Source: Haliotis rubra
Taxonomy: Eukaryota
Reading direction: 5' to 3'
Length of the DNA stretch: 64,000 nt
NCBI RefSeq assembly: GCF_003918875.1
Contig: NW_025766092.1
Span: forward strand, 682,001-746,000
Positions within the stretch are counted from its first letter, which is position 1, and each line of letters opens with the position of its first letter. Positions 41,522 to 63,858 of this stretch are shown here, piece by piece. The notes under the pieces are model-generated. The model was given only the letters and a program-made list of their open reading frames with translations, was not told where the DNA came from and did no database searches. Made by a program: the position numbers and the translations under genes.

Positions 41522-42882
41522 ATGATTGCGGAGTATTTGCTGCTGGGAAGTGTTCCTCTCTTGCTTGGGCTACTTGTCAGCGCAATGTGTCTATATTGCC
41601 GAAAACGCCGGAAGTCCATGTGAGTTTCTTCTGGTTTTCAAATAGGTAAACTAGCACAAAGCCCCAAAACATATTTAAGTTTATTTTTCAAAAGACACAC
41701 GTCAACAATAAATTCTTTTCACATATTGGTTATTCAATCTTAAACTGACAGATATAAAATAGACAACAATATGAAATCAATGACATAGTTCAGCACAATA
41801 ACGCATCACGAGACCATCACATTCTGTTATCAGCCAATCAGGAAACAGGTGTACGTTAGTGGGCGTGGCCTATTTTATTTTGGTATATTTAAACAAATAC
41901 TCTAAAACTATTGCTTGTTAGCGAATCAAATGATAGGGAATCACGTGCGATTTCTTTTAAATTAAATAACAAACACATAAATACATTGTTGACATTTTAA
42001 TTTCAGCGAAAATGTTGGAAGTTTTGAAAGGCCGTCAGTTTCAGACGAAACAGAGCACATTGTCCCTAACATTGTGCTCCCACCTACAAGTCCACGAGAG
42101 AAACAAGTCATCCACATCCTCCGCATCCACTTTGTTAGTCTCAACAGCTGACCAGATCACAGCATGTCCTGCTTCTCCTCCCGCCTGCCGATCACCTGGC
42201 GCCACCTTCAACGACAGCGACTTCGACGACGACCAAAATCCCAGCAACAATGACTGTGCTCTGTATGTCGAATCGTATCCTTTGTGTCGACCTGATCCAT
42301 CGACCCAGTTCCTAATGGACTCCTGCGGGGGGGATTCGGTTGTAGATGCGCCTCCGTCTTCCTTAGTGGACTGCGATGAGGATGGCTCTGATGAGGACCC
42401 TTATGACTACCCACTGTATAACATTCCTGGTTTCTTAAAGAAATCAACAAACGGAGCCAGCTGCAGTAGCAGGTTAATCCAGCCTACCTTGAAGATGGTA
42501 GATGTTACTGTCCATCCCGAACCCACGCCCTGGAAGAAAGACAGATCCGCCACAATACACACAGAGTGTCCAAGTTCCACCATCTCACCAATTGGTGATG
42601 AACTGAACGATGAGGTCAAGGATGAGAATGTTTATCAAGAACTGGGCGCTGTTGATACAGATTCAGATGTATATGCAAACGGAACTTTGCTATCCAATGT
42701 CGAAAAAGCAAGAACAGGTGAAAGGTCAAAATGGAACCAAGAAGAAAATTACGAAGCCGCCTCGAAATGTGTCAGCGAGTCAGACGTTGCCAACAAAGGG
42801 TCCGCCTCCCTGTACAGGACCTGAGTACGTCAACTTTAAGGGACGTATGCGAAGCTCGAAGCCTCCTTCTGATGACCAATAA
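41522..42882 (+). CDS. Transmembrane adaptor-like gene A (TM + CxxC + tyrosine-motif tail); two frameshifts as assembled, possibly a pseudogene
   Basis: Exon 41522-41619 encodes MIAEYLLLGSVPLLLGLLVSAMCLYCRKRRKS with a phase-2 gtgagt donor, and is preceded by a tttttcag acceptor. Exon 2 starts at 42007 (tttcag|). Tail motifs are YDYP, YNIP, YQEL and YANG, with YVNF in a third frame ending at TAA 42882. Paralogous to gene B. Confidence 0.7.
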
Positions 42883-42998
42883 GAACAAAACTATCCCCGA
42901 CTATAAAACATTTTCTTTGTCAAGGTTAAAAAATGTACAGATGGTGACTGCACCAAGGTAACAGTTGTCTAAGTCTAATGCTGCTATTTTTAAATATA

Positions 42999-62400: not shown

Positions 62401-63858
62401 CAGTTGCTGGCTGTGTGCACAGAGAGGGAGCAAACCTTGATTGTGATGGAGTTCCTGGCCAAAGGGCCTCTACTGTCATACTTGAAGGGAAACACCTGTT
62501 CCTTCCAGGATTATGCCACCATTTCACTTCAGGTAACATATGTGATTTGTTCTGAAGCTTACGTTTTACAATCCAGATTGTTAAAATATAATATGTGGAA
62601 ATTTCTATGTTCGGGTCTGTAGATATATGTGCTTCTACAAAACAGGAGAGAGTAACATTTATCGAACGCTGCAGTCAGCTGTTGTGAGTGAATTAGGTTT
62701 TACGCCGCGTTTAGCAATATCCTAGCAAGAACACGGCGTGGGACACCAGAAATGGGCTTCACACATTGTACCCATGTGGGGAATCGAACCAGGGTCTTCG
62801 GCGTGACGAGCGGACACTTTACCAATAAGGCTACCCCATCTGTAGATATATGGTGTTACAAAATAGGACAAATATCTAATTTTACGCTCTAGGCTATAGT
62901 GAATGAATTAGGTTTTACGCCGCCCTTAGCAATTTCCTAGCAAGAACACGGTGGGGGACACCGGAAATGGGTTTCACACGTTGTACCCATGTGGGTATTC
63001 CCTATTTATTTTATTGCAGTGACTCGGACAGTCTGTAAATATATGGTAAAACCTTTTAAGGGACATTTATCCCTCTGAAGTCTGTTACAATTACTGTGCC
63101 TTGTTATAGCTTGGTCACATGTATCGGAAGGTCCATTGATGTCTCGGTCTTCTCCATGTTGGCAGATTGCTGAGGGGATGGCGTTCCTTGAAACACAGAA
63201 CTACATACACCGGGACCTCCGTGCTGCCAACGTCCTTGTCGGTGAAGACGATGACGTCAAGGTCGCAGACTTTGGACTGGCCAGAGTTCTCACTGACGAG
63301 CAGATTTATACAATGTCGCAGAGTAAATACATTCGTTGTTCCGTCACCCATTTCTCCTTTTCGTACACACCTGGTACCTCAGGAAACGCTCTTTAAATCT
63401 TCAACACCATCATCACATGGTTAGGGTACAGTCGGAATCGGAAAATAGACTTTACTTTTTAAAGGTGTACATTGAGAAGAAATACTGAACAAAACTAGTT
63501 AGGGATATACATGTATGTACATTTTGAAATTATGAATAATGATCTATTTATTCATTGACACACTGATAAAATATCAATCATAAAAATTCCAATATCCCTA
63601 AATTATTTTGTCCAGTATAGTATAGAGAGAATCATATGATACTGCTTTCCGTTTAAAGTGGCTAATTATAGACGCAATTGCACCTTTACAATTTTTATTG
63701 ATGCAATTGATATTCTTTTTTCACAGGCACCCCACTTCCTGTAAAGTGGACCGCGCCTGAGGCCCTAAAGTCTCAAAACTTTTCCTCAAAGTCAGACGTG
63801 TGGTCGTACGGTGTCCTCCTGTATGAAATCATCACTGATGGCAGGGATCCCTATCCAG
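56406..63858 (+). CDS. Src-family non-receptor tyrosine kinase (SH4-SH3-SH2-kinase); 3' end lies beyond the window
   Basis: Exons: 56406-56523 (MGCSESKE...), 57199-57301 and 57854-57961 (SH3: [20 protein letters not shown]), 60063-60160 and 60484-60636 (SH2: WWF, FLVREAS, HYRI), 61759-61902 (GEGHFGEVW), 62282-62532 (VAVK, EARIM), 63166-63322 ([14 protein letters not shown]), 63727-63858 ([18 protein letters not shown]). HRDLRAAN is the Src-family catalytic-loop signature. Intron positions and phases largely match the c-Src pattern as I recall it. Confidence 0.93.
57446..57792 (+). mobile_element. Third tRNA-derived SINE (longer, with central conserved domain) in a kinase intron
   Basis: A box tggtgtagtggtt, B box ggttcgatcc, body gtcataccaaaagacgttaaaatatggtac, (cacct)n tail. 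An 11-bp TSD tcactgatcct sits at 57435-57445 and 57793-57803. Confidence 0.85.
58093..58239. other. Assembly gap (147 N) in a kinase intron
   Basis: Run of n characters. Confidence 1.
58581..59646 (-). mobile_element. Non-autonomous Kolobok-type DNA transposon, copy 3 (inverted, in a kinase intron)
   Basis: Same TIRs and TTAA TSD; reverse complement of copies 1 and 2. Confidence 0.88.
60907..61471. mobile_element. hAT-like MITE in a kinase intron
   Basis: taggggtgggtatt pairs with aataccagccccta, with internal gcgata/tatcg subrepeats. Confidence 0.5.

Follow-up and report, generated by a model that had tools for sequence, protein, structure and literature searches.

Two neighbouring Haliotis genes encoding putative membrane-anchored scaffolds with the layout of transmembrane adaptor proteins

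In vertebrates, transmembrane adaptor proteins (TRAPs) are known to organise immunoreceptor signalling. Such proteins combine a short ectodomain and one transmembrane (TM) domain with a palmitoylation motif next to the membrane and a long tail bearing tyrosine motifs (PMC4861716). Two of them, LAT and NTAL, share no major sequence homology (PMC4861716), and the class is therefore defined by layout and not by membership in a homologous family. Here we describe two genes, referred to as A and B, whose predicted products have this layout and which lie in a 64,000-nucleotide stretch (the window) of the blacklip abalone Haliotis rubra, part of assembly GCA_003918875.1, contig QXJH01000208.1. An earlier reading of the window made from the letters alone, referred to here as the sequence-only reading, had described three consecutive genes on the + strand, namely A, B and a kinase gene, as a candidate adaptor pair with its kinase. 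All three genes were present, and we compared the locus with those of H. asinina, H. rufescens and H. cracherodii. We tentatively favour the reading that A and B are convergent membrane-anchored scaffolds of the transmembrane-adaptor type, although we put it at somewhat less than an even chance. All coordinates refer to the window, unless another locus is named. The features of the two genes are as follows:

41522-41619, + strand: gene A exon 1, encoding MIAE, a 22-residue hydrophobic helix, CLYC and RKRRKS, with a phase-2 GTGAGT donor
42007-42882, + strand: gene A large exon, split over three frames, ending in ...PPPCTGPEYVNFKGRMRSSKPPSDDQ and a stop
46120-46220, + strand: gene B exon 1, encoding MSVYTWSE, a 19-residue hydrophobic helix, CIRC and QRNAR, with a phase-2 donor
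47406-48698, + strand: gene B large exon, with the annotated stop at 48610-48612 and the conserved end and stop (48696-48698) in another frame
47819-47839, + strand: FFAT-like core VFFDAAS of gene B, identified from the alignment and a predicted helix, as a motif match only

Exon 1 of both genes contains what had been seen in it before, that is a short N-terminus, one strongly hydrophobic helix, CxxC, basic residues and a phase-2 GT donor; that of gene A showed 81% identity to its counterpart in the annotated orthologue from H. asinina (P0006). The 46220/47406 junction proposed for gene B was in frame and identical to that of RefSeq model LOC124276351, whose 435-aa protein (P0001) is an exact match. 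A protein search with the large exon of B returned LOC124276351 with 100% identity, together with orthologues from H. asinina, H. rufescens and H. cracherodii. The models of B and of all orthologues include the TM exons, contrary to the expectation that annotation would miss them. Literature searches on three LOC identifiers gave no match.

Five orthologous models could be rebuilt exactly from the DNA, each with a 95-101-nt phase-2 first exon and one large exon, and the gene order PPWD1 (-), A (+), B (+) was kept in all four Haliotis species. The dN/dS of A and B was 0.33-0.49, which shows that these fast-evolving proteins are under moderate purifying selection. Both genes are thus real, as they have orthologues with the same two-exon, phase-2 structure in four species, in a conserved order and with dN/dS in this range. 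The PPWD1 exons (WD40 and cyclophilin domain) lie upstream of gene A on the minus strand (27300-31700), and six of them showed 83-95% amino-acid identity to H. rufescens, without frameshifts. In the 3' flank of gene A, an A-rich low-complexity tract of AATA/AAC-type repeats (43900-44300) gives rise to spurious minus-strand ORFs.

In the H. rubra assembly, gene A carries two single extra bases, near 42092 and 42721, relative to H. asinina and H. rufescens. The 41619/42007 junction enters a frame that stops after about 50 codons; exon 1 and its phase-2 donor hold, whereas the single frame assumed through the large exon does not. The segment with LYVESYPLCRP lies in the second frame, and GTKKK... 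and ...YVNFKG lie in the third. Since A spans three frames, the A blocks of the sequence-only reading are real but had been read across frameshifts. The course of the protein in the orthologues from H. asinina (P0006, 322 aa) and H. rufescens (P0007, 319 aa) maps through the three H. rubra frames. Each segment can be read without interruption in the frame that its orthologues use, about 290 codons in all contain no additional stop, and the dN/dS against H. asinina is 0.46. The sole gene A product on record is a 270-aa internal ORF.

Gene B is affected at its end. Its conserved C-terminus, ...PPPKPCSNDVQYVNFRGSLKR, sits past the annotated stop and in another frame in H. rubra; block PCSNDVQYVNFRG, on which the comparison with A had partly been built, is present there, but outside the annotated product. 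The three B orthologues are 462-477 aa long and end in ...PPP(K/Q)PCSNEVQYVNFRGSLRR, and the four-species DNA alignment places one missing base near 48586 in the H. rubra gene.

Similarity between A and B was supported over the last 17-18 residues only (BLASTP E = 0.001; hhalign E = 0.004, probability 8%), at which both carry the C-terminal motif P-x-P-C-x(3-4)-Y-V-N-F-(K/R)-G-x-(L/M)-R. Among the blocks that the two proteins had been said to share, the C-terminal one is therefore supported, while the other two, though conserved within their own orthologue groups, were detected by neither BLASTP nor hhalign. Paralogy over the whole length was rejected for the same reason. In the six-frame translation of the 64-kb window, the pattern PPPC..YVNF[KR]G had exactly two occurrences, in A and in B, and so had the TM-CxxC-basic pattern. 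Given the C-terminal motif together with the identical exon structure, intron phase and tandem position, A and B are best read as diverged tandem duplicates. When a HMMER profile of the four B orthologues was searched against 1.84 billion cluster representatives, only the cluster of B itself was found, and word-indexed searches, for which B, A and a profile of A served as queries, returned Haliotis proteins only. As far as these searches reach, A and B appear to be confined to the genus Haliotis.

The only hydropathy peak of either protein is N-terminal (19-residue Kyte-Doolittle maximum 2.5-3.3). Four to eight residues precede a hydrophobic stretch of 19-22 residues, giving a short putative ectodomain and a single TM helix. 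Positive residues are absent before the helix, a charge of +4 to +5 directly follows it, and an N-out topology may be deduced from these flanking charges. The tails are acidic to near-neutral (pI 4.5-6.4, with 4.5-4.8 for A) and contain 13-15% Ser. AlphaFold2, run on the B alignment, predicted a helix over residues 2-48, with a block-mean pLDDT of 66-86 over residues 1-30, and gave almost all residues beyond 35 a pLDDT below 50; the ESM Atlas models of A and B had a pLDDT of 0.37-0.38.

The juxtamembrane CxxC, a candidate palmitoylation motif, is invariant in all orthologues, as CL(S/Y)C in A and CIRC in B, and YVNF(K/R)G is the one block conserved between the two paralogues. Conserved motifs of B are SYxYICT, DSLKSDVFFDA(A/S)SS-x-SGELGTL, KSYDASSEDS, DPIY(K/T)N and QYVNFRG, and those of A are LYVESYPLCR, YDYP, ENVY(E/Q)EL and YVNFKG. 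The basic block (K/R)R(K/R)PPxKPAR of B, with RKPPLKPAR as its PxxP block, fits PxxPxR in each of the four species and, in H. rubra and H. asinina, RxxPxxP as well. Conservation of the CxxC and tyrosine motifs, as it had been anticipated, was found for the CxxC and the YVNF block but not for the tyrosines as a group, which were not preferentially conserved: five of nine in B against a background of 52%, and six of eight in A against 57%, the latter only slightly above it. Nine of the ten cysteines in the A tail are conserved. The VFFDAAS core of B, which has a Ser/Asp-rich upstream flank (SDSLKSD), is invariant in the four species except at core position 6 (Ala/Ser), and AlphaFold predicted a short helix downstream of it (residues 183-197). 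For comparison, the FFAT consensus is E-F-F-D-A-x-E, and predicted FFAT motifs must be tested (PMC7610837).

The Pfam-A search of the A and B orthologues (hmmscan, up to E = 10) gave nothing beyond FAM176 (E = 0.011; 16 bits, cut-off 31.5 bits), DUF7261 (E = 0.056; 14.1 bits, cut-off 27 bits) and a trace of TM_ErbB1. LAT, LAT2 (NTAL), PAG, LIME1 and SCIMP were accordingly rejected as homologous families, with no Pfam profile match. What holds of the proposed likeness to LAT is the layout, with a few-residue ectodomain, one TM helix, CxxC and a long disordered tail in which YxN, YEEL, YDYP and PxxP are conserved; homology to LAT, NTAL, PAG or LIME does not hold. The likeness of A and B to LAT and NTAL appears to be one of convergent design, not of common descent. 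In a protein-language-model search, A and B independently retrieved A36R, UL135, SCIMP, LIME1/PAG and opalin as look-alikes, with scores of 0.80-0.90, at or below the reliability line of the tool (0.9) and by its own account leads only.

From the observed gene structure, conservation, single helix with disorder and motifs we infer what we regard as the most probable working model. A and B would be a fast-evolving tandem pair of single-pass membrane proteins with a few residues facing outward. After the TM helix, CxxC and a basic cluster would be cytoplasmic, followed by a disordered, acidic, Ser/Pro-rich tail of 290-440 residues with putative docking motifs, namely the C-terminal YVNF in both, IY(K/T)N and RKPPLKPAR in B, and VYEEL and YDYP in A. 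The juxtamembrane cysteines would be palmitoylated and the tail tyrosines phosphorylated by kinases of Src or Syk type. In general, pYxN binds SH2 domains of the Grb2 type, while pYEEI/L binds those of the Src family. Thus, the phosphotyrosines may recruit SH2 proteins (Grb2/Drk type on pYxN and Src-family SH2 on pYEEL), and the PxxP site may recruit SH3 proteins. It is this SH2-binding background, together with the TRAP layout, that makes us favour a convergent membrane scaffold.

Several observations weigh against such a scaffold. A and B have no homology to any known adaptor, their tyrosines are not conserved above background in B and only slightly so in A, and the language-model scores, at or below 0.9, may reflect only an N-terminal TM helix followed by disorder. 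The conserved cysteines of the A tail would be unusual in a cytosolic disordered tail and fit extracellular disulfides. YxxF and YxxL fit endocytic sorting signals too, and the conserved FFAT-like VFFDAAS of B points to the endoplasmic reticulum (ER) protein VAP, not to phosphotyrosine signalling. In addition, the three frameshifts mean that the H. rubra copies may be defective.

Proteins of the same topology could instead serve trafficking and organelle contact, with YVNF, YKNF and YEEL as YxxPhi sorting signals for clathrin adaptors and VFFDAAS bound by the MSP domain of VAP, so that B would be an ER-contact tether or recruiter. Every conserved tyrosine motif does fit Y-x-x-hydrophobic, the lack of preferential tyrosine conservation suits this reading, and VFFDAAS agrees with the FFAT consensus (PMC7610837) at four of its five fixed positions, in a Ser/Asp-rich flank and with four-species conservation that includes the following helix. 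However, both proteins carry the YVNF end although an FFAT-like motif is absent from gene A, and the Asn at +2, which Grb2-type SH2 domains need and sorting signals do not, is kept in every orthologue of both paralogues. YxxPhi signals also usually act close to the membrane, not 300-450 residues away, and a predicted FFAT motif calls for the testing mentioned above. We consider this reading unlikely. Quite improbable, in our view, is a third one, in which the hydrophobic segment acts as a type II anchor or as a signal peptide that is cleaved off and the tail is extracellular, for example that of a secreted acidic matrix or mucin-like protein, which would make the tyrosine motifs irrelevant. 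In A, ...LLVSA followed by MCL is compatible with cleavage at a small-residue (-3,-1) site behind a hydrophobic core of 15 residues, and furin-like sequences are present in both H. rubra (RKRR) and H. asinina (RIRR); B has a conserved N-A-T sequon, and the conserved cysteines and the pI of the A tail are in line with it. On the other hand, by the positive-inside rule positive charges mark the cytosolic flank of a TM helix, and with none before the helix and four or five after it the charge distribution strongly favours N-out/C-in; it is for this reason that the signal-peptide or type II reading is disfavoured. The uncharged stretch of 19-22 residues resembles a TM helix and exceeds the usual core of a signal peptide, H. 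rufescens A has RKQGKS in place of the furin-like site, B has no plausible cleavage site, and no folded domain is predicted for either protein.

The frameshifts themselves may be either Nanopore assembly errors or real lesions. That gene A (two frameshifts) and the C-terminal motif of B (one) are truly inactivated in H. rubra, leaving a pseudogene and a truncated gene, is a serious possibility, even if we hold it for the less probable outcome. The three single-base indels were called against two or three other species and none compensates another, and the only gene A product on record is the internal ORF. Against inactivation, the H. rubra segments remain open in their orthologous frames and have a dN/dS of 0.42-0.48 (against H. 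asinina), like that of intact orthologue pairs (0.33-0.39). The assembly was made from about 30x Nanopore reads with limited polishing, that is two Racon rounds and one Pilon round, followed by hybrid merging, RNA-seq scaffolding and haplotig purging, at a heterozygosity of 1.27-1.44% (PMC6774278). Frameshifts were also sought in about 1.8 kb of six PPWD1 and ten kinase exons and none was found, although the contrast with A and B was not significant. As a practical lesson, single-base indels in this Nanopore-based assembly can hide the functional C-terminal motif of a gene. The features of the neighbouring kinase gene are as follows:

53278-57240, no strand: tandem duplication with a 2,340-bp period; a 36-bp minisatellite heads each unit, and the junction lies inside SH3 exon 1
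54066-54183, + strand: MGCSESK exon, copy 1, a candidate myristoylation/palmitoylation (SH4) exon of the upstream unit, followed by a truncated SH3 exon fragment
56406-56523, + strand: MGCSESK exon, copy 2, with a phase-1 GTGAGG donor compatible with the phase-1 acceptor of SH3 exon 1
57199-57301, + strand: SH3 exon 1, ending ...QLKYIQR
57854-57961, + strand: SH3 exon 2, with a phase-2 GTGGGT donor
58093-58239, no strand: assembly gap, within the intron that separates the SH3 exons from the SH2 exons
60063-60160, + strand: SH2 exon 1 (...GIFLVREAS); Pfam SH2 E = 0.0019 for the 32-aa piece alone
60484-60644, + strand: SH2 exon 2, with an ambiguous 3' end (GC donor after 60636 or weak GT after 60644, either of which preserves the frame)
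61759-61902, + strand: SH2-kinase linker and glycine loop
62282-62532, + strand: kinase exon with VAVK and the alpha-C glutamate; Pfam PK_Tyr_Ser-Thr E = 1.4e-17
63166-63322, + strand: kinase exon with the activation-loop tyrosine; Pfam E = 2.7e-17
63727-63858, + strand: kinase exon with PVKWTAPEA; the gene continues past the window

Judged from its predicted domains, this gene is of the Src-type SH3-SH2-kinase kind. The domains follow each other in the order of the Src family, SH3, SH2 and tyrosine kinase, with intact catalytic motifs, and precomputed Pfam matches on the called gene include SH3_1 and SH2. The best solved relatives of 62282-62532 were Src and BTK; for 63166-63322, one EGFR entry came first among the best solved chains and was followed by Lyn, Lck, Fgr and Src. 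Across the assembly gap, the flanking exons join in phase 2 (...KVN-D-WWFVGS) with an SH3-SH2 linker of normal length, a join that RNA-seq scaffolding may explain (PMC6774278). The gap leaves genes A and B untouched, both of which lie 9.4 kb or more upstream of it. The kinase model on record starts at 57243, has 143 aa with SH3 and SH2 only, and reads through the end of SH2 exon 2. Within 60484-61761, the strongest GT donor (AC|GTTAGT at 60641, i.e. after 60640) is out of phase with the only good next acceptor.

An upstream coding exon is needed, as the SH3 exon has no in-frame ATG before the ALYDY-like strand. The kinase had been claimed to begin with MGCxxSK. A MGCSESK exon that is splice-compatible does exist, and it is very unlikely that the full motif arose by chance; on the other hand, the exon occurs twice, within a tandem duplication, lies outside the model on record and is broken in H. 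asinina, where the homologue has AAG for the ATG and TGA at codon 3. The claim can thus be kept for a candidate exon only. Between the duplication copies, column identity averages 95% over about 1 kb aligned (from the MGC exon to the start of SH3 exon 1), while H. asinina has a single copy of the duplicated unit. The 2.34-kb duplication could be a real recent event or two haplotypes assembled in tandem, the latter because the assembly needed haplotig purging.

The duplication junction was located within 53900-57240, inside SH3 exon 1, after ...TATAAATATGA. The 36-bp minisatellite arrays (53278-53921 and 55566-56260; unit GTTACGTGTACAGTAAAGTACGGTCGTATCACAGTA, 16.7 and 19.7 copies) make long spurious ORFs on both strands. 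In the H. asinina locus (L001), positions 17125-17149 read ATG GGT TGT GCA AAG TGG AAA CAC C followed by GTAAGG, that is MGCAKWKH with a phase-1 donor. This ORF lies about 700 bp downstream of the decayed MGC exon and may have arisen by chance or may have taken over as first exon; its Trp at position 6 is unfavourable for myristoylation. SINE-like repeat copies, with a core like ...CCCATGTGGGGAATCGAACC... followed by CACTCA repeats, were found in introns of gene B and of the kinase gene and in intergenic sequence (46540-46650, 46840-46960, 57447-57805, 62684-62836 and 62890-63000), and several copies are also present in the H. rufescens and H. cracherodii loci.

The kinase and the adaptor pair had been proposed to form a linked module. 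We searched the ten kinase exons by tblastn against the 10-kb flanks downstream of B in the three other Haliotis species, and only the decayed MGC exon of H. asinina was found. As kinase exons were not found within 10 kb of B in these species, a conserved kinase-plus-scaffold module is not supported, and the possible haemocyte or immune role that the sequence-only reading attached to it is likewise unsupported. Colinearity between H. rubra and H. asinina extends from upstream of A to a point shortly before the SH3 exon, where the similarity ends. Just past this end, and before the expected SH3 exon, the H. asinina locus contains a minisatellite of about 1.4 kb (17533-18946 of L001) with 450-aa repeat ORFs in three frames. 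About 9.5 kb downstream of B, H. rufescens and H. cracherodii have the start of an Ig-domain gene that is encoded on the opposite strand. The adjacency of the kinase to A and B therefore looks incidental. Neighbouring positions in a single species are weak evidence that genes form a functional module; as the kinase acting on A and B, the neighbouring one is plausible but unproven.

Perhaps gastropods independently invented palmitoylated TM adaptors. A and B would then be genus-restricted counterparts of LAT and NTAL, whose YVNF, once phosphorylated by a lipid-anchored kinase of Src type (possibly that of the neighbouring gene), recruits an adaptor of the Grb2/Drk type, and B would also be coupled to the ER through FFAT and VAP. 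Taken as a whole this extended form is unlikely enough to be called speculative. A mollusc-specific pair of the TRAP layout would open a way into the study of tyrosine-kinase signalling in abalone, which is farmed and has serious disease problems.

Among the described systems, Src-family kinases resemble the neighbouring gene in the SH3-SH2-kinase order, the FLVRE-type SH2, the glycine loop, the activation-loop Tyr and APE, and in the candidate MGCSESK acylation exon in the right splice phase. The gene differs from them in that its exons match vertebrate Src only moderately, at about 55-60 bits each, and that the MGC exon is duplicated, absent from the model on record and broken in H. asinina; the position of the C-terminal regulatory tyrosine falls beyond the window end (64000). 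With the FFAT-motif ligands of VAP, B shares F2-F3-D4-A5 of the consensus in VFFDAAS and the Ser/Asp-rich flank, whereas its positions 1 and 7 are Val and Ser instead of Glu, gene A lacks the motif, and the match is one of sequence only.

Vaccinia A36R (OPG164) and the human cytomegalovirus (HCMV) protein UL135 were top or near-top look-alikes of A and B (scores 0.87-0.90). Both have an N-terminal TM anchor and a disordered tail with Tyr or Pro motifs that recruits Nck/Grb2 or SH3 proteins. They have no detectable homology to A or B, and scores at or below 0.9 may reflect a generic layout.

The closest comparison is that with the TRAPs (LAT, NTAL/LAT2, PAG/Cbp, LIME and SCIMP). A and B differ from them in having no sequence relationship to them (no Pfam match), in having one (A) or two (B) conserved YxN motifs against five or more in LAT and NTAL, in the many conserved cysteines of the A tail and the FFAT-like motif of B, and in being limited, as far as the searches reach, to one gastropod genus; their lipidation, phosphorylation and partners are inferred only. 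With the TRAPs they share a few-residue ectodomain, a single TM helix with CxxC after it, and a long disordered tail without a domain that carries YxN (Grb2-type) and YEEL-type motifs, and SCIMP, LIME1 and PAG were among their language-model look-alikes. If a mollusc-specific pair indeed has the TRAP layout, it would suggest a scaffold design that emerges time and again wherever Src-type kinases and SH2 adaptors are present.

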